Part shown: positions 203-21,289 of the stretch, piece after piece
How positions within the stretch are numbered: position 1 is the stretch's first letter
Layout of the letters: each line of letters opens with the position of its first letter
Assembly: GCA_964035545.1 (NCBI GenBank)
Contig: OZ037769.1
Location: forward strand, 2,046,001-2,110,000
Reading direction: 5' to 3'
Source: Bugula neritina
Lineage: Eukaryota; Animalia; Bryozoa
DNA length: 64,000 nucleotides
Notes under the pieces: model-generated
Seen by the model: only the letters and a program-made list of their open reading frames with translations
The model's database searches: none
What the model was told of the DNA's origin: nothing
Made by a program: the position numbers and the translations under genes

Positions 203-3200
203 CTAATTTTCCTGATCCGATACATCAACTGGCAGTTGTTGCTTCTGATTTATTTGTGCATCTTTAGAGAGATGAGGAGTTATTGTCCTTGGTGCAGGGA
301 CTGGCTGTGCTTCTTCTGAAGTACTAGGGGCTGAATTGTTTGGTATAATATAATATCCGGAATCTAGCAACTCTGAGTCACCATCTGTGTCAGCTGTGAC
401 ATTTGCACTGGTAGTAGCTACTGTAGCTTGAGTGGGCGTTTTATTTATTCTTTCAGGTGCCTGGTCTGTGCGATGTAATGGGTTGGGTGGCAGAGGTTTT
501 AAAGTAATTTCTATAAAGTAATGATTTGGTGCATTTAAAGTTTCAATTGATTAAAACAGAAATGAACACACATAAATACTTAGCAAATATAAAGAATGCT
601 CATGTAAATAATTAATACAATTTAGCTGCATGTAAGCAAAAGATTTTGTGTAGGGCCACACCACGTTTGTTTTTAAACTACGTCATCCGATTTGGATATT
701 AAAAAAGCGGAAATGCAAACTACATAAAACTGTTTTAATTCAGCTCGCTAGAAGTTAAAATGTAAATTAAAATAAAAAAATGTGCTCGCTAAATATTACA
801 TGGTAATAAGCCAATTCGATCAAACTGTGTCGCACAAGTGCATATGTCGCACTTCTCACTCAGCATGTTAGACGCTTGAAAATCCTCACGCGACGTCCAA
901 TTTTTGGACTAAATGGGATTTCTCGCGTCGTGTGGCCCTACATTTAATGAACAAAGCTCGAGATGATGAAATAAAGAGGTAATGAAAAATAGAGGGCCTA
1001 TTTCCTTACAAATGAGAAGTTTTTATGCTGCCATCACTGCCTACAAATTTTGGACTTAATGCAAATATCAAAGCCATATACAATTTGAGTTTTTCTTGCA
1101 AAATGCAACTCACCATCAACAGCCTGTCTGCCAGAATTTCCAGTTAGCCAATCATTACTCCTCTTTCCGTTGTAAGGCAATGAATAGGTAGCTTCATCTG
1201 TGAATTTGTTGAAAAAAACAAGTTTAAGCATTTTAAAAGGCTAATTTTTATGTGCACAATAACAATAGTGTATATTAATAGTGTATATTACATGTTCACA
1301 CTTGCTATAAATCTATATATTGCTGCGCATTTCTATGAAAATTTTATTGAAGTATAAAATATAGTAATATCAAATTTTATCAATTCAAAACGTGACTTTA
1401 GAAAACTAAAAATAGATTTACAGCAAGTTCTCAAGAACTTTTTGCAACTTAGTAAATTGAACATTCACTGTATTTGTTAGTATGTTAACTAAAAGAACTG
1501 CAACAGGCAACAAAGTCACTTACTAGGAAGATTGGATGAAGTTCCACTTGCAATGTAGACGTGACTTCCTTTATTGGACAAACCTTTAGACATTTTTTGT
1601 GACTGTCCTATTAAGAAGATACAACAAAAACATTTATTGTTTTCTCTAAAATATATTAATTGTAGACAAACATTTACTTTGCTCATCAGCAGATTTTGAT
1701 ATATTTCAAAAACATATATTACTTATATATTTCAGTCAACAGCTTTTGCTTTTCTTCACAAAATTATTAGTTTTATAAGAAAAATTTTGAAACCACCATC
1801 ATTAGGAAGTTCAACTTAGATTGAAAATGTTCTTGCTCTCATTCAATAACGAGGTGAAAGGTGCATATGCTTAATATATAAGTGACTTTCTATACCTTTG
1901 TTTTTGATGACAAGCAAAATGACTGCAATGACAAGAAGTAGGATGACTGTCCCTAAGCAAATCGCAATTGCAATGGTCTGTTGGTTAGCCTTTGTTGGTA
2001 CAGCTGTACTGGAAAAGTCACTTTTCCCCTGACCAGGGCACAAACTTGCACAACGAGGATCACATGATCTGCTTACTAAAATGTCTTGTATAATTTCTAA
2101 AGAACCAGAGTCATCAGTTTTGTAAAACATTGGTACGTCTGAGTCATTTGGTACAGAGATGCCATTGTTGGAATCAAACTCATAAATTAGCACGTAGTGA
2201 TATTTTGAAGTGCCAGGAATCAACTGTTGGGAGAAAACTTGATAACCACTGTTTCCATCTAAGTTTGCATCAAAAGGTGAGAGTCCCGCATCTCCACTCG
2301 TCTCAGAGCTAGAATCATTTTGAGGAATTCTTACTCTCCCAATATTATACTTCAGTTCTTGTGAAGAATACAGTGTTCTATCAAGTAGCTTACTGCAAGT
2401 TTTAATACTTTGACCTTCACATTCACGATCAGCATAATTCATGAACCCATATACTAAAGAGTAAATTGACTTTAAAGTGTAGAGGGCATAAATTTCGACA
2501 TTTGTTTCTGCACCTTCCATGATATAAGATTCATTGGTGGGACAAATATTAACTGTAGAGGAAGTGAAGGAACCTCGGACCTTGCAAGCTCTCTTTGTTT
2601 CATACATCATTACAGTCCAATGGTTTGAGGCAAGGCTACTAGCTCTTATACTTGATAAATGGTTTTGAAACTTGTTTACCTGTAAGAAAAATTTACAAAC
2701 ATTTAAAAAATTAGTACAATTATTTATTTGTTCTAATTCCAATACCTCATAAACTAATAAAAGAGTAAACATAATTTTCAGTATGTGAGAGAGTTGAAGG
2801 CACAATACATTTTAGGTGACACATAGTTTATATATTTTGATTACTATATTTACTTGAAATTCTGGTTTCACTTTAAAGGTGAGAGATCCTCTTAGAATGT
2901 GCCCATATTTCTCTAAAAGAGATATTCTATTCTCCCACACTTCTGTCATTATAAATATGCTGCCACTTTTCTTCCACCAGTTCTCATGTACAAACTTCAT
3001 ATTGTCTAAGAGATCTCTGATTGGCTGAAAAGTATAGTTGAAATTACCAGAAAATTTGAATAAAAAACCTCTGATTGATATATTTATTTTACTGATAATT
3101 ATTCAATAATTTTTAATACTTTATGCAAAACTTTGGATTTTACTGAGAAGTAGTCATTATGAAACTTTATAGTATGAATAATAAATTCTGTAATGTTTTT

Positions 3201-6200
3201 CATTTAACATGGAGCAAATAATTTTTGATCACTTTAATAATTAGCGCCTACCTTTTCTTCCCCAGAGTATATGATCACAAAACTATTCTTCTTTTGAGAC
3301 TGCAGAGTGGACCAAATAGAGTTGTACGTGTTGGTAGTTTCTTCTCCCAAATAACTTAGTTGAAAAGACTCAATTATGCAGTAGTTAGACTTGTTTAAAT
3401 GGCTTCTTACAAGCTGCAAAATGGTAAAAACCTCAAGTTCAACATTTTAAGTTTGAAAGAGATTTTGCTACGAAATAACTTTCAGGCAATATTGGCTTAC
3501 TGAATTTAGCTCCAGAATTTCAGATCTGCGAAAAATTAACTGTACTCAGTGCCGATCAATCAACACAAAGTAGCTATAATCACGGTTTCTAATCCACACA
3601 ATAAAAACTTTAAGTTTGCTATTTGTAGCTTTGCTACTATATATACAAAGCTTATAGCTATAAGTTTTGGGGAGCTTTAAATAAGTGTTTCTGTTTCTCA
3701 ACTACATACTGCTACAGTAACAGCAAATGGGCCAACCTCTGCTGTAGTCTCCCCATACAAAGAGTCTGTGTTCATCAGCACCACGGAATTTATATCAGTT
3801 CTCCCAGCGGAGTTCAGGTTGTTTAGTAATTTTATCAGATTTGCCGTAATTCTGGTTGTAGACGGATGAGTCCGCAGGAAGTGGGTGAACTCAGTCTTGT
3901 CATCCAGTTGCCATGTCGCCGCACCATAAGCTACTTGAATAATGTTAGCAGGAATCATCAGTCTCTGCTCCTGTAATTCAAGTTTAAAAACTTACAAGTA
4001 AAGGTCAAGCTTATAGTAAAACATAAACTTTTCCAATGTTGAAATATGTTTTATGTTAGCTTTATGGCAACCTGACTAGTTAAAAACTACAAAACACAAA
4101 AAAAATTATACAATAAACTTAGAGATAGCGCTTAAATTTCAGTAGAGCAATAATAAGTGAGACAGTTTACCGTAACAGATATGTGACTACTGTAATCTCC
4201 AACCAGTCCAATGATCTTTGACCGATCTAGACATTGCTCTTTGTTACAGTATTCTGTTGTACCATTTAGCACATCTGTGAGTAACTTCTGAGTAAGAGCT
4301 GTGTTGAAGCAGGTGTCAAGAATTAGCAGGCCTAAATTGAGACCTTTATCTTGAAAGAGTTCATTTAGTCGTGTCCTAGCAAACGTAGCAGCTTCAGCTC
4401 TCAGCGATGCTTCTGCGTTGAACTTCTGACAGCTCCATAAATCAGGATATTCATTGAAACTGCAAAGTATGAAGCCGTTGTTTTTCTAGTACCAATCTTG
4501 TTTGCCTTATGTAGGTCAAACCTAAATATTGCATAAAAGCAGTGTTTGTTTGCAAAAAAAATAAGATTTTCGTGATAAGTTTTATAAACTGAGGTTTTCC
4601 TTAAAACAGATTTCTTAAGATATTTAAACTTCTGCTCAATTATCCTAACCTACCTGTCATGAATAGGCATAGTGACAACTACAATAAAGTCTCCTGGCAG
4701 GTAGATGTAATCTGGTACAGGTAGTTGCTGACTACACTTTACTCGACAGCTCTCACTGGTACACCACATGTCTGTGTTCATCTCTGCCCTGGAGTCCACC
4801 ATAGACCAACCACTGGAAGGGATGTATGTCTCCTAACAAAAATGATATCAATTTTATTTTGAGGCATTTTTTTTAATATAATTCAATCCACTAGGGATCT
4901 TCTTTATAAGTTGGAAGTAATCAATTAATTGACTGTTCATTTTACCATTTACAAGATAATGCTTACAAATAGATCCATAACATTTAGATAAAAAATGAAA
5001 GACCTTCAGAACATCACCACCATAACAGATTCACAGGTCATTTTGTTAACACAAATTTAGAGATCAAGACAAAAAGTTCTAAATTCTAAATTTGTATTGA
5101 AGTATACATAAAAAATTTTACCCCTTCTGTTAGCTGGTAAAGTGGTATTTCTGGCTGTATTTGAAGAACATTTTTCATAAATCTGAGGCCGAAAGTTTCG
5201 TTATCATAATCTAAAGTTATGCTGATAGATTTCACTTTCTCATTGGTCAGCTTCTGTAACTTCTCAACTTTAAGGTTAGGGCAAACTCCTATTCTGCCTG
5301 AGCACTCACTATTCACCACTTCCTGTACGGAAGCAACCAATAAGCGCACTGCTGCTAAAGTTTGGAAGACGTTAGATCCAGCAGAGCTATTCAGCTGGTA
5401 CTGTTTTACAATGTGTATAGAGTCATGAGCACCAGCTAGAAACTCAAAGTCTTCTTTCTCTGGGAGTTCAGGAGAAACAATCTTAAAAAGACTGGAGCTA
5501 GTGGTATGAGTAGGGTTTACTAAAAGCAAAAGATAATAAAATTTCATTTTCGTTGTTTCAAGATCCAATCTGGTATAAAAAAGTTTGTGAAATTTTTTTC
5601 TATGGCATTTTTTGGTGGCATGAATAGAATTCACTAAAATATAGGCTAGCATTTATAAAAATTTGTTTTAAAAAATTATATCTTATATACTGATTGCAAA
5701 ATAATTTTTGTCACTATTCAGTGTTCTTTGGTCACAATATGTAAATGTTTCTCAAAAAACAGTCAGTCAAGTCAGTCAATAGAAAGTAAATAAGCAAAGT
5801 ATTCTTAACAACAAAATTTATATCACGTCACTGCGTTGTAAATTTTTCAGTATTACAAGTGATTTGCTGCTGCACACCATCTACTTCAGCTAAATTGCCA
5901 AGAACGTTATGAAAATATTATTACAACTTTCTGACCCTTTTTTTAACATTCTCTTCGTTGGCTTTTATGATTAAAACCTGACAAGGAAACATTTAGCAGA
6001 TGCTAAGACTGAAATATTTTACCACCAAAGAAATAACATTTGACTTGTTATTCATAAAAATGATTGATGTTGGCACAATTGTCTCTTAGGTTTTTAGCTC
6101 AAATTTCAACATTGCACCAGAAAAAAATGACAATACCTGTGGTAAATGATAATATTGTGGTTGTTTAACTCCTAGTATTACTAAAATTTCAACAGTAACA

Positions 6201-8939
6201 AATAAAGTTTGATGAGTTACAAAGCGATAAACTAACTTCAACTGAAAAAATGCTGAAAGTGGATTCTTTCTAACAGTTGATGCGCAAAAGAAAAGCTAAA
6301 ACTTACATTCACTTGGTGCTGACAGAATTATAACTCCCCGAGGTTTATCCGACCCTGTCACATTACGTATGAGTTGAGAGGAAGTGGCATCTTGGGGGAA
6401 CTCAATGTAGCTGTCTACACACACCCTCTTTTCTCTGAGTTCAACTTCCAGCAGCTGTCTCAGAGCTCTACCGGAAGTTGTGGAGCCATAAGCCACTGTT
6501 GTATAGTCCCAGTTCAACTTGACTGCTAACTCTGCTATTGCCTAGCAACATGGAGTTTAATTTTGCAATATTTTATTCTTAGAAAATATTAAAAGATAGT
6601 TAGTATGTAAAATAATTTTTTAGTGTTAAAAATGCACTACTTTCAAAGCTTTCTTTATTGCTTCTCTATTTTGATGGACGATTTTAAGTTTTACTTTACA
6701 CATTACAGCTTCTGTAAAAAATTGGTAAAATCTTTAGTCAAAAATATAGGCAATTAAAAGTAGAATCTCACTTTGGCCCTCCACTTCAAAAGAGGGCTGG
6801 TATAATATAAGTTGTCATCATAAATAGTTGAGTCTGAAAATTCTTCAAAGCTTATGTAAGGAATTCCAGTAGATCTCAGTACTAATTGATGAATCTTTAG
6901 CAAGCCAACACTATCAATCACGCCTAATAAGTAATAGCATATTTTGACAAATGGGCAGATATAAACGAGACAGATCCAACAATGTTCATTAATTTGCTAA
7001 AGAGCTTTATATCAAAATCAAATGATAAAGTTTTTTCTTGAGCACCATTTTGTTTTGCAAACCAATTGTTCTTTTATAAATTATGTAGTTATCGACCTAC
7101 TGCATGAGATAAAAAAAATGTTCAGTCAATTAGGTGTAATATCGTGATGGAGTAAATGTATATAATCATATATATATAGAACATAGAATCCAGGCAATAT
7201 TATACTAAAATCTTGAAGTTTTGAATATTTGTTAAAAAATCCTTACAGTCTAGACAAATTTAAAAAAATACAAATATTTGAAGCTTGAAATATAATAAAA
7301 AACTAAATATAAGATAATATTAGCTTCCTGTCAGCTATTTTTAAACCAACAAACCAATGAGTGTGCTGTTAGCATAGGACACTGTGCTTTTAACTCCTTC
7401 ACATGATTCTCTTAGCAAAACTTGATTAGAGATCTCTGTGCTCACTTTGATTGCAGAATTGGAGTCACTCCTACAGACTGAGAGGACTTGTACTCCTAAC
7501 ATGCAAAACCAAACAATGTAAATAAAATTCTACAGCATATGATGATGAGTTAATAAATTTAAATTTGTCATGCTATTGAACTAAAAAACCATTTGTTATT
7601 TTTAAAAGAGCATATAATTTCAATCACAAAAAAGCCACTTCACATGAATTGCATGTTATGACTCCAGTAAAATTAATTTAAATTTATTTTTTAGTTTTAG
7701 TAAGTGCAAATTTACTTCGACCATTATTATAATCAGATAAATTGTTCAAACTCTTTTGCCTTAAGCTTAACTAATTTATCTCTGTTCATGCATGAAATAG
7801 CTTACTTCTAATTGGCTGGTAAATGCTCACAAGCAATAAAACATAAAGGATTTCCAGTTAACAAACACTAAACCCACTCACCAAAATTCAATGATTGTTC
7901 ACTGTTGATACTATTCAAAGTTTCCTTGACTTTCTGTACTTTGGCTGATGCCGGTCTATTTTGATTGGCTAAACAGTCAGCGTTTTCTCCAGTAATAAAT
8001 ATTATGTGGAAGTCTGAATCTAAAATAGTAGTGAAAAGTTGCGATACATATATAGACAATATTTGAAGCAATACCATGAAGTAATTACTTGTCAAATATA
8101 TTTGACTTTTTGGAAACAAATCATATATCTAAAAAACAAAACTATATTGAGTTTTCTAACTCTCATGAGTTGTTACGCCAGCATTTTTCTCTTAACTACA
8201 TAGACATAGTGTCTAGCTAACATTGGTGCAGCAAAACAAGCAGATGTTATATTATGATGCTAAAATGGAGCATTTATTAAACGCAATTTATCTATTTTAA
8301 TAGAGAAATTTTTAGACAGGTTTGCATATATGATGCATTTTAAAGAGAACCAGAAATTAAACAGTGCAACTTTTACTAAACATTATATTTTGCTAGCTGA
8401 TACAGTTAATTATTATTTATATTTTAATCACTAGCTTTTAACAATTATAAAATTAGAAAGTTATTATAGTTGCCTCATAATTCTTTGATTATTGCTTAAA
8501 CACAACTATACTTGTAATTTAATATATGACACCAGATTATGTTTCAACAAGTTATAATAAAATTGACCCTATTATAGTATAATTATTGTAATGTATTATA
8601 TTATATTGTAATGTATTATGATGGTCATAATATATTATATTATTCAGTAGCTATCAGTACACTGTAGTGTGCATGGCATTTTTAGTTTCAGCTTACATGC
8701 TTGCCCAAAGCGCTTTATACAAGCAAGTGGACTTTAAAATTTTTTTTAATGTGCAAATTCAAGAACATTGATTTTAAAAACAGATATTGTAAATAAGTGC
8801 TGAATATCTAATGCAAAATGAAAATATTACTTTTAGGTTTACCTTGAGAGACTGACTGCTTTAAGCATGTTTGAGTGCTGACGAGGTCAGTTATGCATAA
8901 TCCTACAACAGCAAGTACAATTTGAATGAGTTTTCTCAT
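203..8939 (-). CDS. Receptor R1: signal peptide + two tandem class C (mGluR/CaSR-like) Venus flytrap domains + single TM helix + Tyr/Pro-motif cytoplasmic tail (15 exons, ~1150 aa)
   Basis: Hand-spliced GT-AG exons with consistent phases, approx. 8939-8843 (MRKLIQIVLAVVGLCITDLVSTQTC, signal peptide), 8020-7880, 7495-7355, 6924-6772, 6542-6306, 5520-5122, 4832-4654, 4459-4171, 3971-3738, 3413-3252, 3024-2854, 2679-1896, 1607-1524, 1198-1112, 510-203 (stop TAG at 203-205). mGluR/CaSR-like motifs: YLPGDFIVVVTMPIH, LGLLILDTC, IIGLVGDYSS, IIQVAYGAATWQLDDKTEFTHFLRTHPS, NWDYTTV, DSLYGE, IMTEVW, FDANLDG. TM helix IAIAICLGTVILLLVIAVILLVI followed by KNK. Confidence 0.85.
653..938. mobile_element. MITE (~290 bp) in the last intron of R1
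   Basis: Terminal inverted repeats GGGCCACACCACG (653-665) and CGTCGTGTGGCCC (926-938), one mismatch. TA on both flanks (651-652, 939-940). Non-coding, CpG-richer interior. Confidence 0.75.
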
Positions 8940-9906
8940 TTCTAAGTATGTCCTAATATCTTGGTAGTTACTGAACTATAATATAAAAGTTACTATCCAC
9001 TTTTTTACAAAGTTTTAACTTTTGATATACAGCTACTAGACATAAATAATTGCCTAAGTAGCTTAACTATATTTTAATCTTTATTAATGATTTAAAACCC
9101 ATCTGTAGTGTTGAGTTTACCCATGCAGTAGCCCCTTTAAATTTCAACAGGGAGGAGTGGGGAGCAAACTTTTATATGATTGATCATTTGTAGATAAAAC
9201 ATTATTTGGGCCATATAACTTAATTACAGTAGATATAGTTTAGCTTTTTATATAACCTTTGTAATGCACTCGTTTTATTAAAGGAATACCCTAATAAGCT
9301 CTTGTTATATTATAGAAACAATATTGTTTTGTGTGGCATGCAAGCATGCCTTTGTTTCTATTCATTTTCTTTTACTCACAGAATAATTTATTCACTGCTA
9401 GAAACTTGATTTAGAAATAATTACTTCAGTTACTTGAGATTACTAATGAAAATCAATCAAACTTTTCACTACTCATTGTCGCACTGGATATGCAAGTGAA
9501 ATGTTGCAGAAAGAAAGTGGTGCAAAATTTATATGCAGTGCAAGAGGGTTTATGTGCAAAAACATAGTTATTTAACATAAAAAACATATATTTTCATAAC
9601 AATAAATAAATTAAAAGCTATTCTCATCATGTGTGATATAAACAACCATTAACATGTTACACATATTATTATGATGCATGGCCATACTGGCATCATTTTA
9701 TAACAATTAGTCAGGTGGAAGAAACTTGTGTTGTTAAAAGAGCATTGTGTGCTCAAGTAAGCACAAAAATATTGTTTTAGTAATAATAAGCTAACCGCAT
9801 TATACTTTTTTATAATACAGAGATTGTCGTCTTAAATATACATAATATGAACAAAAAATGGAAAATATAAATATAATTTTTATAGAAATAAAATAAGGCT
9901 GCTTCT

Positions 9907-12900
9907 TCAACTTTCTTCATCAGATTCACCAACTGAAGGTTGTTGTTCATTGTTTACCGAGTCCTCTTTAGATGAGCGGAGAGTTGTTTTCCTTGGTATT
10001 GGTATGGGTTTTTCCTCACTAAGAGTACTCCAGTAGGGGTTATTTGGTATGATATATGTAGAGTTTACTGACAGAGGTCGCTCGTTGGATGGGGTGTTAA
10101 ACTCATCAACTGGGTTATTGGTGCTAATCGGGGTACCAGTTGTGACCTGCGTGGGATTGTGGTAGGAGCTTGAAGTTGTCTGGGAGAGACGGTGTGGTGG
10201 GAGAGGTGCAGGCATAGGAGGTAATTCTAAAAAATCAACAACTGCAATTTTTATTTTTCATTATGAAAGTAGAAAAAACACCAGATAATTTAAAAGACCT
10301 CTTAAAATTCTGCAGCCGTTATTTGTCTAGTAGACAGTAAAAGAAATTTTCCAACTGATAAAATTAGACATTTTCATGAAAAAAATGAAATTAAACAAAA
10401 TTCAGCGTCTTAAATTTTCAATTGCTTTGATAATAATGCTACCAACAAAATCATGTCATTCATTTCTTCTAGCAATCGGTTTATAGTTGAAAAGTAATTA
10501 TGAAGTTGATCTCTTCATAGATTGTTACAAATATCAAAGAAACTAAATGGAAGTTTTAGCTGACATCAGAAAATGACTCACCATCTGCAGGCTGTCTACC
10601 AAAATCTCTCATAGACAGGTTATCTCCCCTGTTTTCACCATAAGGTAGTGAATAGGTTCCCATATCTGTAAAATATAGCAGTTCATTTTTGGGTAAAAAA
10701 GGCCAATAGATAGTAAATGTTCAGTTTTATAACTTTATTATATATACGGTTAAATGCTGTCAGAAAGCAGTTGCACAAAGAGTAAATATAAAACATTTGA
10801 AATCTCACGGCTACAGAAATACCTACATGAATGACTGTATTGGCTTCCACTGGCAAGATAAACATGAGTTTCCTTTTCGGTATCTTTTGGCTTTTGACAT
10901 GGCATTCCTATTTAATAGAAATTGTAAAAAAAGTGAATAAGTTTCTTGACAAATAAACTACTTTATTTTTTGCATTTGATAGTTAATTTAGTGTAGTACA
11001 TGTCAGTTTTTCTTCTCTAGAAATTAGTAAAAATATTTTGCACTCATTCAAAAAATGAAAGTTTTGAGAGCATGAAACCTGTCTATTTTGTCAATTTTAT
11101 TAGCTAATAAATTCTCATAAGGTTATATTATATTAAGAATAAAACATTTAATTCTACTATACCTTTTTTTTTGACAGCTAGCAATATGACTGCAATGAGA
11201 AGAATTAGAATGACTATTCCTGAGCAAGTGGCAATAACAATGATCTGTTGGTTAGCTTTGCTTGGTGCAGCTGTACTGTCACTTTTCTCTTGACCAGGAC
11301 AGAAACTTGCACAATGAAGATCACATGACCTGCTTACTAAAACATCTTGTACAACCTCTGAAGAACCAGAGTCATCAGTTGTGTAGAAAACTGGTACGTC
11401 TGAGTCATTTGGTACAGAGATGTCATTGTTGGTATTAAACTCATAAACTAACACATAGCGATAGTTTGAAGTGCCTGGAATCAACTGTTGGGAGAAAACT
11501 TGGTAACCACTGTTGCCATCCAAATTTTCATCAAAAGGTAAGAGTCCCGCATCCCCACTCGTCTCGGAGCTAGAATCATTTTGAGGAATTCTTACTCTCC
11601 CAATATTATGTTTTAACTCTTGTGAAGAATACAATGTTCTATCAAGTAGCTTACTGCAAGTTTTAATACTTTGACCTTCACATTCACGATCAGCATAATT
11701 CATGAACCCGTATACTAAAGAGTAAATTGATTTTAGAGTAAAGAGAGCATAAATTTCAACATTAACTTCTGAACTTTCCATTGCATAGGATTCATTGGTG
11801 GGGCAAATGCTAGCTGTAGAGGAAGTGAAGGAACCTCGGACCTTGCAGCTTTTCACTGTTTCATACATGGTTGTAGTCCAAAGATTTGAGGCAAGGCCAC
11901 TAGGTCGTATGCCTAACAAATGATTTTGAAATCCGTTTACCTGAAATAAAACTTAAATGATTTGTCTGGAGAAATAAACACTCAAACGTAATCTAAGGGC
12001 TTATTATTTATACACAGTTAGCTAACACAATGTGTCCACCAGGCAATTTGCGGATGCTCATTTTGTATTTTAAGAGTTGTCATCACAACTAAATATTTTG
12101 ATTAAAACATATTAATCTAAATGTATGCTCACTTGAAATTCTGGCTTCAGCTTGAAGGTGAGGGATCCTCTTAAAATGTGCCCGTATCTCTCTAAAAGAG
12201 GTATTCGGTCCTCCCACACTTCTGTCATTATAAATATGCTGCCGCTTTCTTTCCACCAGTTTTCGTTTACAAACTTCATATTATCTAAGAGGTCTCTGAT
12301 TGGCTAAAAAAAAGTTAATGTTGCTAGAACCAATGCAGTTTCTAAAAAAACAGTTTTTACGCATATCTAAATCCGCTATGCTGAAGCACAACAGCAATTT
12401 ATGATGTGAAAAAATTGATGAAAGAACTATTTTAGTTGAGTAATTTAATATTTTTTAAAATCACATCATCTTATGAAATTTAGTTTGATATTGTATTGAG
12501 GACTATTTATTTTAAAAATAACTTGTGCACCGAAAACATTTACAAAGATTAGCTTGTATTTTTATAAGTTCTTGAAAATACACCTAATATTTCAAAACTT
12601 ACAATACATAATAAACTGTAGCATGTGCTTTACATAGCATGGAGCATCTAAGTTGTATCACTTTTAAATAGTATCATACCTTCTCTTCCCCAGAGTATAT
12701 GATGACAAAACTTCTTTCACTGTAAGACTGTAGAGTGGACCAAATAGAATCATATGTGCTGGTAGTTTCCTCTCCCAAAAAACTTAGTTGAAAGGACTCA
12801 ATGATGCAGTAGTTAGACTTGTTTAAATGACTTCTTACAAGCTACAAAATAGTGAACAGTTATATGGAATACTATGCTTCTTACAGCACAGGTTTACACT

Positions 12901-15900
12901 CATGCTGAGAGCCACGTATTCATGCAACCACATAACTGTGTAAACAGATAACCATGTAACCGGGTAACCGTGAAACCATTTAACCATGTATCTATAATTC
13001 AACTATGCAACCGTTTAGCCATATAAAAGGTAACCATGTAACCACGTGTCTATGCAACCATGCAACCATGTAGCCATGCAACAATGTAACCATAACATCG
13101 TGTGACCATATAACCATATAACCGTGTAACCATGACACCACTTGACCATTTATCAATGCAACCATAGTATAACTTAGACGATATTTTGTCATATGCTGTT
13201 TGACCATAGCATCTCCAAAGTATATTCAAAATATTTCTATGGGTGTTTGCCAAGATCAGTTTAAAAGCAGTGTATTAATATATTACATAGACGCAAATTA
13301 TATCTGTAAATAAGTAAATATTAAGATATTCAAAGAACCAACCTCTGCCGTTGTCTCCCCATACAAAGAGTCTGTGTTCATCAACACCACAGAATTTATA
13401 TCAGTTTTCCCAGCGGAGTTCAGGTTGTTTAGTAATTTTATAAGGTTTGCCGTAATTCTGGTTGCAGACGGATGAGTCCGCAGGAAGTGGGTGAACTCAG
13501 TCTTGTCGTCCAGTTGCCATGTCGACGCACCATAAGCTACTTGAATAATGTTAGCAGGAATCATCAGCCTCTGTTCCTGTTATTATAGCATGAAACTTAC
13601 TCAATACTTTACTGAAGGTAAGTTCAATTCCCATGACTTTCAAACAATTTCTAGCAAAAACAAATTAAATATCTAAAAGCATTAAGATATTTTTGATATT
13701 TTCCAGGATGATTTGAAAGATTTCTGTTAGCAGTTATTTTGAAAACTATAAGATCGCAACGAAAAAGTATTTTAGACTTTTTCATATAGTTTTGCGTTTC
13801 ACTCCAACTTCTTTACCAGTATTAAAATACATTATTTCATAAAATTGTTTCTAGTTATTTAAATGCCATCTACCATAACCAATAAAAAGTTGGTTATTTG
13901 TGTGTAAGATTTGATACACTAAATAGGACTCATAGCTTTTCAGACCATTGTTCAGAAAAATGTATATTCTCTCAAAAGTAAGTTTAGATTATAGACATGG
14001 AAATTGAATTCTAAAATTGGAAGGACAGAAAGATAAACTTTAAAATAAGTTGAGAATGTTAAATTTTTAATAAAGTTATATATAAGACAGCATACCGTAA
14101 CAGATATGTGACTACTGTAATCTCCAACCAGTCCAATGATCTTTGACCGATCTAGACATTGCTCTTCATTACAGTATTCTGTTGTACCATTTAGCACATC
14201 TGTGAGCAACTTCTGAGTAAGAGCTGTGTTGAAACAGGTGTCCAGAATTAGCAGGCCTAAATTGAGACCTTTATCTTGAAAGAGTTGATTTAGTCGTGTC
14301 CTAGCAAACGTAGCAGCTTCAGCTCTCAGCGATGCTTCTGCGTTAAACTTCTGACAGCTCCATAAATCAGGATATTCATTGAAACTAAAAAATAATGCTG
14401 TTGGTAATTCTTAATTTTTAAAAAAGTTTATTTTTTAAACTGAAAGGTCAAATCTGAGCCTAAACTGTGAGAAATATTAATTACACCAGAAATTTTGTAA
14501 ACTTTAGGAGATCCCTGTATACTTTTACTCGCAAAAAGTAAATTTTTTTAAGCGATTATGTAATATTAGGAAAGAATTACATTTTATTTGTGTATTATCA
14601 TGTCTATTAAAAGATCATGTGTGCATATAATTAAATAATAACATGCCTATATTCCTATAAAAAATCTTCTTAGATATAACCTGCTTGGATTTTATTAGAA
14701 GGATGCCTTATTATGATTTTACTCACTACTTATAGTCAATTATCAAAACCTACCTGTCATGAACAGGCATAGTGACAACTATAATAAAGTCTCCTGGCAG
14801 GTAGATGTAATCTGGTACAGGTAGCTGCTGACTACACTTCACTCGACAGCTCTCACTGGTACACCACATGTCTGTGTTCATCTCTGCCACGGAGTCCACC
14901 ATAGACCAACCACTGGCAGAGCTGTATGTCTCCTAACAAATAATTTATAATGCAATTAGCAATATATTATTGTGCTGGGAATAATATAATATTATTTTTT
15001 ATGTGACAGGATAGTCTCAGTTTTTCTATAGAACTTTTCAAATCAACCACTTACATTCATGCAAAGCTGCAAAAACAATTACTTCCAATTAAACAAATTT
15101 TAACAACCGGATGTTTTTTTAACGGGATATTATAAACACCAGCAGTTTTTATTATGGCTTGCAAAAATAAAATTTTTAAATTCTTACATCTTCTTTCAGT
15201 TGAAAAAGTGGTGCTTTTGGCTCGATCTGAAGAAAGTTTTTCACGAATTTGGTTGTACTGGTTGTATTCGCATAATCTAAAGTTACGCTGATAGATGTCA
15301 CTTTCTCATTGGTCAGCTTCTGTAACTCCTCAACTTCAAGGTTAGGACAAACTGCTATTCTGCCTGAGCACTCACTATTCACCACTTCCTGTACGGAAGC
15401 AGCCAATAAGCGCACTGCTGCCAAAGTTTGGAAGACGTTAGATTCAGCAGAGCTATTTAGCTGGTACTGTTTCACGATGTGTATAGAGTCATGAGCACCA
15501 GCAAGGAACTCAAAGTCTTCTCTCTCTGGGAGTTCAGGGGAGACAATCCAAGAAAGACTGGAGCTAGTGGAATGAATAGGGTTTACTATAAACAAGAAAA
15601 AAGAACACAATGATTATATTCATATTTCCATTATTTTAAGAACTAATGTGGTATCGAAAAAAGCTATAATGTAGCTTTTAACTTTCATCGTAAATAATGA
15701 TTAAAAATTTAGTAAAGATTAACAGTTATAATTTTTTTTATAAATGCAGTATAGTTGTATTTAGAGGGTGGATAGTACAAGGGTGTGTACTGTGTAAGAG
15801 GTGGATAGTACGCAAGGGTGTGTAAGGGGTGGATAGTGCAAGGGTGTGTAAGGTGTAGATTGTTTAACCAGCTTTTAAGCAGTATATATAGCTCCAGTTT

Positions 15901-16888
15901 GTGTGGAATGAACACGCAACACATTTAGGTTACTTTGCATGTTTGTCAAAAATAACAAATTAATTGAAGTTAATTTAAAGTTTGAACTACAAATAAAAGT
16001 TGGAAAAATATGAAATAATAAATATCATTTGATTATCTTACTAATGTTTTATGTTCAAATTAAAATTTAATCTTAAAGTTCTTTAACGTATAACGCTAAA
16101 AACAAATGCATTAACATATTTTTAGACATGTGATGCACAAAAGTTAAAGTAAATTATTTACACTTATTAGGTGTTGACAGAATTATAACTCCCCGAGGTT
16201 TATCCGACCCTGTCACATTACGTATGAGTTGAGAGGCAGTGGCATCTTGGGGGAACTCAATGTAGCTGTCTACACACACCCTCTTCTCTCTGAGTTCAAC
16301 TTCTAGCAGCTGTCTCAGAGCTCTACCGGAAGTTGTGGAGCCATACGCCACTGTTGTATAGTCCCAGTTCAATTTGACTGCTAACTCTGCTATCACCTAG
16401 CCACACATAGTATACATTATAGTGTTATTGTAGATGCTGCAACCTCTCATTATAAAAGCTGCATTACTACTGAAAGATTATATATTTGCAAGAGTAATCA
16501 AAATGATAATTTTCAACTCTTTTCTGGATGCTTTTATTTCTACTTATAGTTTCAGGCTTGACACTATAATAGCTGCACACTTTTAGCATCAGTTTCTAAG
16601 AAATATTTTAAACTCGAGATTTTTCAATCAATATTCTTTGCAACAAGAACTATAATATAAAGTAGTCAGCTCACCTGAGCTCTCCATCTTAAAGGACTGC
16701 TGGCATAGAATAAATTATTATCATAAGTTATAGAGTCTGGTATTTCCTCAAAGCTAATGTAAGGAATATCTGTGGATCTCAGTAGCTGCTGGACATTCGA
16801 CAAGCCTACACTGTCTATAACACCTGACAAACAAACAGCATAACTTTAGAATTAACTAATTAGTATATCTATTAAGCTTTGCAAAGCA

Positions 16889-16935
<47 letters not shown>

Positions 16936-19900
16936 TTTTGTTTTTTTTCAAGTAATATTATTGCAATTGAGAAAACATTCAGGCTCCAACACAGTTTAAA
17001 TTTGGAAGCGACTAAATTACTTTATTAACCAACCAATGAGAATACATATTGCGTTAATATAACCAACCAATGAGAATGCTGTCCGCAGACGACACAGTGT
17101 TTTTAACTCCCCCACATGATTCTGTTAGTAAAACTTGATTAGAGATCTCTGTGTTCACTCTGATCATAGACTTGGAGTCACTCCTACAGACTGACAGTAC
17201 TTGTACTCCTAAGGAAATATAATAATAATAATATAGTGTGAGCAAGTAATATTAGTAATTTGAATTAAGGTTGTATTGAACTGTACTGAAAAGTATAACT
17301 ATTACAGTTTTTTTTTGTTAGACCACAAAGATTTGAAATTGTTTGTCTCTGCGGCTTCTCCTATACATTTGAGTCACACAATAATACTGTAATATAATAA
17401 TATACAAAGCTAATAATTATACAAAATATTTATCATATATGCATTTTATTTGGTACCTATATACACACATATCACCAGTTTAAGAATTATCAGCATTTTA
17501 GCTTCATGCGAAAGTTGATCAGTTGAAACATATGCATTTCATTTAACTCAACTTAAATTTGATGACAGAAAAATAGAGAAACCCATTTCCAATAACCAAT
17601 AAAACTATAATTATTTGTAGTTAAAATTGCTCACCAAAATTCAAAGATTGTTCGCTGTTGATATTATTCAAGGTTTCCTTGACTTTCTGTACTTTGGCTG
17701 ATGCCAGTCCATTTTGATTGGCTAAACAGTCAGCGTCTTCTCCACTAATAAATATTATGTGGAAGTCTGAATCTAAAAACGTAGTGAAATGTTCCAGTAC
17801 ATATACAAACAATGAAGCAATAGCATTTAGAACTCCAAGTCTAAAATAACATTCTAAAAACAGATAAATGTATTGGCAATGCAGGACTAAAATATTAGTG
17901 CTTGTAAGTTTTTTTCTGCTTTTTAAAGAACAAATATATCATGTAACTGGACAATAGCATTACATAAATGTTTTTGAGTTAAAAAATAATCCTTACTCAG
18001 TAGGATAAAACAATACCTAATTTACTATAAGCTTATATACTGGAGTTATCAAATGTATAAACATAATGTTATGATGTAGTATTATTAATTTTTTTACTAC
18101 ATGTCACATAACATTTTGTGACACACAGTTTTAAATCAGAACATTATGTGACCTACTTGAATAGTGACAATCTCGTAGGTATTATTAAATCAAAGTATAA
18201 ACCAATGTATTTCATGCCTTTATATATAGACTTGCTCCAAATTAATCGGTTTGTAGAGTTTAATAACCTTCCTTTTTATATAGAAAAGCTGGCGTTAACT
18301 TTTTATATAAGTAAAACAAGTGATACAATTTATGCTCATATTGTCCTTTAATGCTGAATAAACAATTTTGCAAAAACTTTCCATTCAACTACCGTAAAAT
18401 GGGGTAACTTTAGCCACTTGGGGTAACTTTGGCCACTTTGGAAAAAATGTTTAAAATGTAGCTGGTGCTATATCTATGAAGTCTAAAAATATTTTAATTG
18501 TATATATGCACTGACTGCAGATTGGTGCATCCTATTCCTGAAAAATAATTGATATACTTATTTGCTGCTTCTTGCTGTCAGCCATTTTCAATTTCCTGTT
18601 TGACAACAAGATTTTCAGCGCTGTCCAACTTTAATCTATTTGAAGGCATTAGAAAAGCTGGACTCATTTTCTTTTTTGTATTAAAGAACTTTGGTAAGTA
18701 TTTAACCAGGATATTTGTAATTTAAGTAAATAAATTGAAATCCAAAATTAAAATATGTGTCTTGAATTCACTGTGTACAATTTTTGACGAATTTGGGGTA
18801 ACTTTGGCCATGACTAAATGGTACTCCAAAGTAGGTTTCTGGCAGCGCTGCGAATTTTCTGTTACTTCAGACACATAGTACATTACTCTCTAAAGGCACA
18901 ATCATTTGATTCACCTATACCCAATTTTTTAGTTATATATTTGAAACAACTTAGAGTCCGAAATATGAAATAATTACATGGGGAATTATGCATTTTTGTT
19001 CCCAGACAGCAATTTTGGGTTTAATGTTTTTTTTTATATAAGAATTTGACCATGCATTGTAAAATGTATTTTTCAAGACAATTATACTCAGAAAATATTA
19101 AAGAAAAGTAACATCTCCAAGATATGGTATATCTGAGGAGATTATTGGTTTTGCTTTATTCACAAGAATTGGCAGCTGGAAAGTCTTGACAAGAAGTGGC
19201 TAGAAATATGATATTACCAAAGGAACACTACAAAACAGAGCCGCATGAAGACACAAGCTGAAGCCTGGACGCCAAACTGTGTTATCACAAGTAGAGGAGG
19301 TAGCCATTGTTGACCATACCTACTACAAAGCTGGCTCAATGGGGCTCTCCGTTAGATAAAACAGACTTTCGAATAATAGTCAAGACCTATTTTGACAAAT
19401 GTGAGAGAAGAGTGCAACATTTCAAAAGCAACTACCCTCAAAATCACTGGAGTCTCAGTTTTATGTCAAGACATAAAGATAGCTTGTCTCACAGGTTGTG
19501 CCAAAACATAGCACCGGAATGGGCAACAGTTAATTCTGAAGACATTACGCATTATTTAAAAAATCTACAGACAACTGCTGCAGCCTATAGTTTGAAAGGG
19601 CATACTTGAATTTAAGATTAAATTCAATGGAATTTGAACTTGTACAGTGATTTATTCAATGTTGCAAGCAAAATACCTGATTTTTTATATATATACAAAA
19701 GTTTTTACACTTAATAACAATGTACCTCGAATAGCTGTGGTTTCAATGCAATAATTACACTATTATAGCTTGCATTTTGTCTAAAATAATTTTTTTTTGT
19801 AGTAATGAAGTTGAATAATGTTGTTCTTTAATTTCTAACTGGCTAAAAAAGCTCCAAGTGCTGCTAACTTTAGCTACATGGAGAATAACGACACCGGCCA

Positions 19901-21289
19901 AAGTTACCCCAAAAATAGGGTAACTTTGGCCACCTACTTTTTTTAATACCACAGGAGATCTAGCAGTCCCAAATTGCAAATGGTTCTTTCATTTAGTGCA
20001 TATGCTGATAAGCTTCATTTAGCATCCAAAAATTTTAAAGAATATTGTAATTCTTTCATATGACACCCAAAATATGTCTCAAAACGGCCAATGTTACCCC
20101 ATTTTACGGTAGTTATAGTATTAATATTAGTGTTTTAAACACATTGTAGCACATTGAATGGTTCAAATATTTGGATTGAGTACAAACTATAGAACTTACA
20201 TTAATAATCCTAATGAAGAATGTAGTCAAGTGGAACCAATAAACAGATTCCTGCTAGGCATATAGTTCAGCTTAAGCAGTGACTAAACATTGCGACATAA
20301 CAGGAAGCTTTCAAGCACTGCATAGCACAGATTTTAGTAAAAAACAGGGAAAAATCCCTTCCCCTTTAGCACTAAACAAGACATATATCCTAAGTGTGTA
20401 TTTCCAATCAAATATATTACTTCTCTGAATAATAAGCACTTAAAAAGCCACAGAATATGAGCATTTTTTATAGATTAGTATAATTAGTGAAATTGCTGCA
20501 ATCTAAATGTCAACAAAGGATGAGTCTCAAAACATGATCAACCCCCTCCCCCCTTCTCTCACTATATTGAAGATTATATAATTCATTATGTAATGTATTA
20601 ACATCAAAGTGGTGGTTGTATAAATTTGCAGACTAAAATGCACTAAAAAGCTGTAGCGTCAAACTGCTACTTAATTATACATACTTCAAGATGACTAATT
20701 TGATTTTCATGCACTTTTGTACAACAGACAAACTATATTATATAACTTTAAAGCACATATAAGGTCACAAAACCATTTGTGTAAACAATTTTGATAGGAT
20801 TTTCTTAAATTAATTTTTTAAGTTATTTGAACACAATGTGATAAATAAATTTAAATTGAACATCTGCCATGCCTTCACTACAGAAGTAACTATAGTATAG
20901 AAATTAAGGTATACCTGCCGTAACTCTGGACTCTCTAATAACAATGTTTACTTGTTATAATATTTTAGTAACGTACTACATCCCATAATGCATTTCCTCA
21001 CTGTTATGAGATGCAGTATGCAATATCTGAAATTATGAGCTTCACATTACAACCTACAAGTTCCAGGAGTTGAAATCTGAGTGAAGCAATAAATTGATAA
21101 CTAAGAAGCAGAATTTAGCTTATCTTACAAATAGCTTTAATATACACCTCAAGAGCTAAATTAGTGATAGCTAGCTTATCTCTTACCATTTGAAGTTGAT
21201 TGTTTCAAACACGTTTGAGCCCCGACTAAATGTAACACGCATAATCCAAGGACAGTGTAGAGTAAAACTTGCGTTATAAGTTTCTCCAT
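9907..21289 (-). CDS. Receptor R2: tandem paralog of R1 (double Venus flytrap, single TM, Tyr/Pro-motif tail; 15 exons)
   Basis: Same exon structure and phases as R1, approx. 21289-21187 (MEKLITQVLLYTVLGLCVLHLVGAQTC), 17772-17635, 17208-17070, 16824-16675, 16396-16161, 15586-15187, 14932-14754, 14384-14096, 13577-13343, 12842-12680, 12304-12132, 11940-11163, 10907-10827, 10665-10582, 10226-9907. TM IIVIATCSGIVILILLIAVILLAV followed by KKKG. In-frame upstream ATGs at ~21304/21307 are possible starts. Confidence 0.85.
12922..13170. repeat. Degenerate ~8-10 bp tandem repeat (GTAACCAT/GCAACCAT) in an R2 intron
   Basis: Many imperfect AACCATGT/AACCATAT units. Explains the spurious ORFs 12992-13207 and 13050-13253. 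Confidence 0.8.
15764..15856. repeat. Short degenerate minisatellite (GGTGGATAGTAC..AAGGGTGTGTA) x3
   Basis: Three imperfect ~27-33 bp units visible directly in R2 intron 5. Confidence 0.7.
16892..16928. repeat. (TA)n microsatellite
   Basis: Pure TA run. Confidence 0.95.
18392..20109 (+). mobile_element. Internally deleted pogo/Tigger-like (Tc1/mariner superfamily) DNA transposon in intron 1 of R2
   Basis: TIRs CCGTAAAATGGGGTAACTTTAGCC (18392-) and GGCCAATGTTACCCCATTTTACGG (-20109), with TA target duplication (18390-18391, 20110-20111). Disrupted transposase N-terminus at ~19120-19570: psq-like HTH (YDITKGTLQNR..PGRQTVLSQVEE) and CENP-B-like HTH (WGSPLDKTDFRIIVKTYFD..HWSLSFMSRH). No DDE domain seen. 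Confidence 0.9.

Follow-up and report, generated by a model that had tools for sequence, protein, structure and literature searches.

The window analyzed here, a 64-kb stretch of contig OZ037769.1 (positions 2,046,001–2,110,000; the contig is C5 in locus names) from a bryozoan genome of 216 Mb and approximately 30% GC, carries two genes, A and B, each predicted to encode a protein with two Venus flytrap (VFT) domains in tandem, a single transmembrane (TM) helix and a cytoplasmic tail. Exon borders were set from open frames, GT/AG sites and phase rules together with a three-way comparison with gene C, a third copy located beyond the window start. Both genes are on the minus strand, gene A running from 8939 to 206 (15 exons, 1151 codons, stop TAG at 205–203) and gene B from 21307 to 9910 (15 exons, 1159 codons, stop TGA at 9909–9907). 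In these exon-by-exon models all introns are GT-AG, the phases are consistent and there are zero in-frame stops; the splice sites are common to genes A, B and C, and the exons of A and B stand out against each other as blocks of 71–96% DNA identity. The order of parts is the same in both genes, namely a signal peptide (exon 1), VFT1 (exons 2–6), the three-Cys linker CTSESCRVKC (exon 7), VFT2 (exons 7–12), a second three-Cys linker, the TM helix and the tail (exons 13–15), as follows in window coordinates.

8843–8939, minus strand: gene A exon 1, start codon and signal peptide (hydrophobic segment at residues 1–26)
8019–7882, 7495–7355, 6923–6772, 6541–6307 and 5519–5122, minus strand: gene A exons 2–6, VFT1, read as a degenerate flytrap (splice model; ANF_receptor match on exon 5; fold via the relative P0055)
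4654–4832, minus strand: gene A exon 7, VFT1 end, linker CTSESCRVKC (4763–4734) and VFT2 start
4459–4171, 3970–3737, 3413–3252 and 3024–2854, minus strand: gene A exons 8–11, N-terminal two thirds of the mGluR-like VFT2 (ANF_receptor on exon 9; splice model)
1896–2679, minus strand: gene A exon 12, last third of VFT2, linker CDPRCASLC (2064–2038), TM helix (1977–1906) and KNK stop-transfer
1524–1607, minus strand: gene A exon 13, 84-nt symmetric tail cassette with HVYIASG at 1563–1543 (third-position substitution pattern versus gene B)
1114–1197, minus strand: gene A exon 14, 84-nt symmetric tail cassette with TYSLPY at 1189–1172
203–510, minus strand: gene A exon 15, terminal tail exon with YIIPNN (352–335), PVPAPR (304–287) and stop TAG (205–203)
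8940–9906: spacer of 967 bp between the gene B stop and the gene A start codon
21187–21307, minus strand: gene B exon 1, start codon and signal peptide (hydropathy)
17772–17635, 17208–17068, 16823–16675, 16396–16162 and 15585–15188, minus strand: gene B exons 2–6, VFT1
14754–14932, minus strand: gene B exon 7, linker CTSESCRVKC (14863–14834)
14384–14096, 13576–13343, 12841–12680 and 12303–12133, minus strand: gene B exons 8–11, VFT2
11163–11940, minus strand: gene B exon 12, VFT2 end, linker CDLHCASFC (11325–11299) and TM helix (11244–11173)
10907–10827, 10665–10582 and 10226–9910, minus strand: gene B tail exons 13–15, with HVYLASG, TYSLPY, YIIPNN, PIPIPR (10008–9991) and stop TGA (9909–9907)

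The two-gene architecture proposed in the initial annotation was recovered, with open reading frames (ORFs) and motifs in their expected places and phase-consistent, GT-AG models of 15 exons throughout. Hydropathy analysis of A and B detected two hydrophobic segments in each, the signal peptide in exon 1 and one TM segment in exon 12, the latter exon holding the end of VFT2, the second linker, one TM helix and a basic stop-transfer. The predicted combination of two ANF_receptor domains, one TM helix and no 7tm_3 domain agreed with the hydropathy profile and with exon-wise Pfam searches (matches on exons 5 and 9). The introns 3′ of the TM exon measured 288, 326 and 603 bp in gene A and 255, 161 and 355 bp in gene B, the range of 161–603 bp fitting the earlier estimate of about 160–600 bp. 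The tail had been described as short and disordered after a single TM helix; the disorder and the single helix stood, but the tail is not very short, extending over ~155–158 residues and three exons.

Genes A and B were searched and folded exon by exon, and statements on full-length proteins rest on two natural relatives, P0055 (encoded by the transcript-like contig described below) and P0057 (a Bugula neritina database entry). In exon-wise Pfam searches, ANF_receptor matched exon 5 (profile positions 110–187) and exon 9 (profile positions 74–118) of both genes, with 25.8 bits for exon 9 of gene A. Single exons of A and B gave no match to PDB sequences, the signal appearing only with full-length P0055. 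A phmmer search of the PDB with this protein returned metabotropic glutamate receptors (mGluR5, 4, 1, 7, 8, 3 and 6) at E values of 4e-17 to 2e-7 across the whole flytrap (residues 413–870), with T1R and GABA-B receptors weaker and below the mGluRs; no chain from natriuretic peptide receptors (NPRs) or ionotropic glutamate receptors (iGluRs) was among the 60 PDB matches listed. An AlphaFold model of gene A exon 12 (27-sequence alignment; predicted local distance difference test score, pLDDT, of 71) retrieved class C VFTs as all of its top 50 Foldseek matches, and the language-model neighbors of this exon were ANF_receptor clusters, with a weak score of 0.79.

VFT1 is far more degenerate than VFT2, and weaker lines of evidence point to its fold. 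Profiles of the two flytraps aligned to each other in hhalign on trimmed alignments with an E value of 3e-5 and a probability of 73% over 204 collinear columns, and the language-model neighbors of VFT1 were ANF_receptor clusters (score 0.93). A Foldseek search with the low-confidence AF2 model of VFT1 gave matches to the flytraps of CaSR and mGluRs (E 6e-8, ~270 columns) and, lower down, to a few amino-terminal domains of iGluRs. This fold was computed on a smaller alignment, MAFFT having misplaced pieces of exons 6 and 2 when many exon fragments were included. Taken together, the assignment to a double flytrap of the class C type is strongly supported for VFT2 and moderately for VFT1, and the mGluR-type origin put forward in the initial annotation is supported by the PDB matches of P0055 (mGluR, then T1R and GABA-B) and the Foldseek matches of the exon 12 and VFT1 models.

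Closer examination of VFT2 in P0055 revealed that it was nearer to distant, few-intron members of the family (E 5e-25 to 5e-15) than to the canonical mGluR flytrap of the animal itself (1e-11), and VFT2 shared approximately 19% identity with the mGluR flytrap of the same animal. The Asp of the mGluR “PSD” motif was replaced by V, F or A in four of four members aligned, and the “SYxxT” stretch of mGluRs reads YGAAT in genes A to C. Since the PSD Asp is lost and SYxxT is changed to YGAAT, a canonical α-amino-acid site is disfavored, and the ligand is probably not a plain α-amino acid.

The two genes had been reported as a tandem pair; they are instead two members of a tandem array of at least four genes. 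Gene C (C5:2035564–2044145) starts with its own signal-peptide exon ~2 kb after the gene A stop, and a more diverged fourth copy, gene D, lies beyond it. Searching the genome with exon 12 gave 11 close loci with a common exon order (seven on C5, one on C4 and three on C2). Four distant genes carry the VFT1 end, the Cys linker, an ANF_receptor domain (E 1e-23 to 1e-34), the second Cys linker and one TM helix in a single large ORF with few introns, at the following loci.

C1:2641410–2644040: distant few-intron gene L033
C1:2652909–2655371: distant few-intron gene L032
C2:5803148–5805622: distant few-intron gene L035
C3:3646025–3647701: distant few-intron gene L034

Against a library of 1.84 billion representatives, exon 12 gave 25 matches, 22 of them true relatives in the form of single-exon ORFs of 157–310 residues; the other three were long unrelated proteins aligned over only ~40 residues and were rejected. 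Among 26 aligned exon 12 relatives, all had the flytrap end, and all except three short rows had the Cys motif and one TM helix. Relatives from B. neritina were found under KAF6030576.1 (“GRM5”, 1193 aa; P0057) and KAF6016456.1 (“GRM5”, 621 aa; P0026), and under KAF6025892.1 and EB796_012176, labeled as uncharacterized. A JGI contig labeled with the B. neritina mitogenome accession AY690838 shared 87.7% identity with gene C over 3.1 kb, introns included. More distant relatives occurred on metagenome contigs (samples BRYA16-1 and WANG22-1), one of which, L024, keeps the VFT1-linker-VFT2-TM exon order; as a guess, these contigs stem from other bryozoans. The double-flytrap single-pass family so far appears lineage-restricted, having been seen in Bugula-like genomes and on unannotated, possibly bryozoan contigs.

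The stretch between the TM exon and the next gene was searched for an output domain. The gap from the stop to the next gene is 967 bp for gene B and ~2 kb for gene A, and no minus-strand ORF of at least 35 aa from the TM exon to the next gene (spacer and tail introns) matched Pfam. No kinase, cyclase, phosphatase or seven-transmembrane (7TM) exon was found between any TM exon and the next gene, and no 7tm_3 match lay near the array; the genome does carry 7tm_3 genes, the nearest being 10 Mb away on C5. NCD3G (PF07562) matched neither exons 7 and 12 of A and B (E up to 1) nor P0055 and P0057, and Lig_chan gave no match, both clamshells being of the ANF_receptor type with a single TM helix. In the full-length relatives P0055 and P0057, ANF_receptor was the sole Pfam domain, with one TM helix each. 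The short introns after the TM exon, the next gene 1–2 kb further on and the Pfam-negative ORFs bear out the earlier argument that there is no room for a hidden 7TM, kinase or cyclase domain, and the argument against a truncation artifact gains from the same ending being seen in paralogs, in B. neritina gene models and in a transcript-like contig with a stop and a 3′ untranslated region (UTR). Run-on into tyrosine phosphatase exons was considered and rejected, such exons being numerous in the genome, with none between a TM exon and the next gene.

As a separate observation, Y_phosphatase exons are hugely expanded genome-wide, with at least 150 matches and clusters at C1:3.97–4.23 Mb, C6:8.02–8.43 Mb and C3:7.6–8.1 Mb. 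The nearest to the array are at C5:2138459–2146713, 28 kb past the window end. The B. neritina gene for P0057 likewise has a phosphatase fragment 5 kb downstream of it; fusion with receptor genes was not seen.

Transcript-level information came from contig L023 (3618 nt; Logan, run SRR4125604), which contains an uninterrupted ORF of 1141 aa (P0055) flanked by 62 nt on the 5′ side and 130 nt on the 3′ side. Over the span compared, from the VFT2 start to the 3′ UTR, L023 aligned to the genomic paralog G in six exon blocks with 88–98% identity, and its TM exon is joined straight to one terminal exon with the stop, followed by 130 nt of UTR. Given the exon-block alignment and this direct TM-to-terminal exon joint, L023 looks like the spliced mRNA of the B. 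neritina orthologue of paralog G, so that at least this one paralog appears to be expressed. Genes A and B are intact and under purifying selection, with ratios of non-synonymous to synonymous substitution rates (dN/dS) between A and B of 0.29 for VFT1, 0.13 for exons 8–11, 0.29 for exon 12 and 0.42 for the tail; for gene C and its B. neritina orthologue the ratio was 0.19 over 476 codons with zero stops. Synonymous divergence between A and B was very uneven: the tail exons reached 1.24, exon 7 had 0.06 and the remaining exons of the ectodomain 0.25–0.35. This could reflect exon-centered gene conversion between tandem copies or a separate history of the tail.

The tails of A and B, encoded by exons 13–15, are made up of 70–73% polar or disorder-promoting residues. 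In both genes, exons 13 and 14 measure 81–84 nt and form symmetric phase 1-1 cassettes, so that skipping either one keeps the frame, and the cassettes would allow alternatively spliced tails with or without Tyr motifs. The transcript of paralog G has no exon of the exon 13/14 cassette type. Genes A and B both contain HVYxASG, TYSLPY and YIIPNN, and the tail ORFs of paralogs D, E, F, J and K also have a YxxP motif. YxxP was absent from P0055, and as a family-defining tail motif it was rejected, being missing from both gene C and P0055. The emphasis that the initial annotation placed on Tyr motifs does not carry over to the family, gene C lacking two of them; the conserved motif is PxPxPR.

In 9 of the 11 paralogs, the sequence downstream of the TM exon contained a single PxPxPR, always in the terminal ORF and 5–38 residues before the stop; the motif was also present in the four B. 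neritina proteins P0055, P0057, P0026 and P0065, as well as in the tail ORFs of L025 and L029, the two distant contigs that reach far enough. A six-frame translation of the 64-kb window contained two matches, corresponding to the tails of A and B. PxxxPR is the ligand consensus of the SH3 domains of CIN85 (PMC2833206), and the PxPxPR tails fit, as a pattern match, this consensus of CIN85/CD2AP-type SH3 ligands. This suggests that a bryozoan CIN85/CD2AP-type adaptor could bind PxPxPR. The tail ORF of L025 (2801–3439) additionally shows four R/K-S-A-S-(V/T)-D repeats, resembling a basophilic-kinase site, and PRPRPR.

Elsewhere in the window, a 260-bp SINE-like repeat (short interspersed nuclear element) at 663–926 lies in the last intron of gene A and has at least 40 genomic copies of 82–93% identity. 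A degenerate minisatellite with units of 8, 16 and 40 bp at 12921–13162 in gene B intron 9 is the source of odd WLHGYMV-type ORFs, and a (TA)18 run occupies 16892–16928 in gene B intron 3. The region from 21500 to 64000 is AT-rich (27–33% GC); no tRNA and no further double-flytrap gene were found in it, and none of its nine ORFs of at least 95 aa matched Pfam.

Several known systems share part of this organization. VFT2 aligns with mGluRs over its full length and shares the DTC and N-x-W-F…C-K segments and, in our reading, the Cys-x3-4-Cys right after each flytrap would resemble the start of the mGluR cysteine-rich domain. Unlike mGluRs, the proteins described here have two flytraps rather than one, three Cys in place of the nine-Cys domain, one TM helix rather than seven and no G-protein-coupling part, and have lost the PSD Asp. 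Of the three features considered for G-protein-coupled receptors (GPCRs) of class C, one was found, an ANF_receptor flytrap nearest to mGluR/CaSR, whereas NCD3G and 7tm_3 were not. NPR-C, a dimer with one peptide-binding NPR-type domain and a 37-residue tail, is similar in combining an ANF_receptor ectodomain, one TM helix and a non-catalytic tail; compared with NPR-A/B/C, the present proteins have two mGluR-type flytraps, a tail of ~155 residues and neither a kinase-homology nor a guanylate cyclase domain. In contrast to iGluRs, there is no S1S2/Lig_chan clamshell and no pore region, and there is one TM helix. Venus kinase receptors (VKRs) likewise place a class-C-like flytrap on a single TM helix and are invertebrate-restricted, but they combine a single flytrap with an insulin-receptor-like tyrosine kinase domain (PMC2680970, PMC3703292), as opposed to two flytraps and no tyrosine kinase domain after the TM helix here. 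The flatworm SmGBP is encoded by an mGluR-derived flytrap gene without a 7TM region, verified by rapid amplification of cDNA ends (PMC3206071); at ~485 residues, compared with ~1150 here, it consists of a single flytrap and lacks a Cys linker as well as a C-terminal TM helix and tail. The bacterial sensor kinases BvgS and EvgS have tandem periplasmic flytraps before a single membrane span, the membrane-distal one not being the main ligand site (PMC4352136). They are of an unrelated periplasmic-binding-protein type with histidine kinase output and show no homology beyond the general periplasmic-binding-protein fold, so that they serve as an analogy for transmission through tandem VFTs.

The literature searched describes tandem flytraps for BvgS/EvgS and trypanosome cyclases, not for animal class C-type domains, and no paper describing the tandem-VFT single-TM architecture was found in it, NCBI and UniProt holding only automatic names (uncharacterized, “GRM5”). 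The earlier view of the architecture as undescribed therefore fits the literature, although the proteins themselves were already deposited as B. neritina gene models under such names. On the basis of the sequence comparisons, the combination of a double mGluR-type flytrap, one TM helix and a docking tail is considered to define a candidate, previously undescribed receptor family in bryozoans.

A possible origin is that, in an ancestral mGluR-type class C receptor, the unit formed by the flytrap and the first cysteines after it was duplicated in tandem, and that the nine-Cys domain and 7TM region were lost, which would leave the ectodomain on one TM helix with a disordered tail of ~100–160 residues. 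Class C flytraps are dimers in which closure moves the membrane-proximal ends, and single-pass flytrap receptors (NPRs, VKRs) relay such movement via one helix per protomer. By extension, the ectodomain would dimerize like other class C flytraps, and ligand would close the mGluR-like VFT2 and thereby respace or rotate the two juxtamembrane linkers with their TM helices, as in NPR/VKR; VFT1, having lost the binding-site signature, could act as a modulatory or structural cap. Output would then consist of recruitment, with PxPxPR near the C-terminus docking an SH3 adaptor and Tyr motifs that differ between paralogs (YxxP, TYSLPY, HVYxASG) and lie in part on skippable cassettes adding phosphotyrosine-dependent partners. 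Because docking motifs are the sole cytoplasmic features, we tentatively favor, as something close to an even call, a ligand-dependent rearrangement or clustering of the tails that recruits an SH3 adaptor and, in some paralogs, phosphotyrosine readers too. Doubtful, if conceivable, is the wider proposal that bryozoans use a tandem-VFT single-pass family with SH3/SH2 adaptors, expanded in a chemoreceptor-like manner to at least 15 genes and equipped with spliceable tail cassettes, to detect small molecules from the environment, for instance cues for larval settlement or for food, with neither G proteins nor a built-in enzyme.

Several points weigh against this interpretation. The VFT1 model has a mean pLDDT of 59 (core 80–92), its weakness being attributable to the smaller alignment on which it was built, and the hhalign probability is only the 73% given above. 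The PSD and SYxxT positions are presumed to be mGluR ligand contacts on the basis of mGluR1 numbering and one alignment. The transcript covers the orthologue of paralog G, not genes A and B themselves. The Tyr motifs are unconserved even in the closest paralog, gene C being without the first and third (HVYxASG and YIIPNN), and the search for PxPxPR in downstream sequence found none for paralogs H and I, nor any within 4 kb of the four distant few-intron genes. The functional steps, i.e. ligand binding, dimerization and adaptor binding, are all predicted ones.

The same organization might instead serve endocytosis, clearance or uptake, the double flytrap capturing its ligand and the tail being used for internalization and sorting with no signaling output. 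Such a role accords with finding no catalytic or G-protein-coupling part and with the variability of the Tyr motifs, and has parallels in NPR-C as a clearance receptor and in the CIN85-type adaptors of receptor endocytosis; the known readers of the PxxxPR-type element, the only family-wide one in the tail, are endocytic adaptors (PMC2833206). NPR-C signals too, however, so that clearance and signaling are not exclusive; moreover, no conserved YxxΦ or dileucine sorting signal occurs in the tails, and tandem expansion with fast-diverging tails carrying Tyr motifs on cassettes resembles a sensory or signaling family. We regard a pure clearance role as unlikely. It is more improbable that these proteins are non-autonomous subunits pairing through their flytraps with canonical 7TM class C receptors as dominant-negative forms or co-receptors. 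The flytraps of class C receptors dimerize obligately, canonical VFT plus 7tm_3 genes are retained in the genome, and truncated mGluR forms without a 7TM region are known (SmGBP, PMC3206071), but the low identity of VFT2 to the mGluR flytrap of the same animal (~19%) and a conserved cytoplasmic motif of its own in a family of at least 11 members are hard to square with a mere modulator. That transcripts run on to distant catalytic or 7TM exons, or that A and B are unexpressed pseudogenes, is very improbable: the transcript support does come from a paralog and Y_phosphatase exons are scattered in the genome (one set 28 kb past the window, a fragment 5 kb downstream of the P0057 gene), but a family gene with its own signal peptide follows 1–2 kb after each stop, no phosphatase, kinase or 7TM exon intervenes from the TM exon to that gene, the paralog transcript ends in a stop and UTR, every one of the 30 exons is intact and dN/dS stays well under 1, and PxPxPR, where present, sits just before the stop.

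The output parts known for VFT domains are a 7TM region, an ion channel, a cyclase or a kinase. Under the reading preferred here, in which the tails recruit an SH3 adaptor upon ligand binding, the combination of two mGluR-type flytraps with a single helix and a docking tail alone would be a further mode of coupling, and the family would provide a natural test case for flytrap closure relayed via a single TM helix. Work on larval settlement and biofouling uses Bugula neritina as a standard model. In bryozoans, for which there is almost no receptor biology, the family marks a lineage-specific expansion of receptors, and the conserved PxPxPR may offer a concrete handle on its downstream partner.

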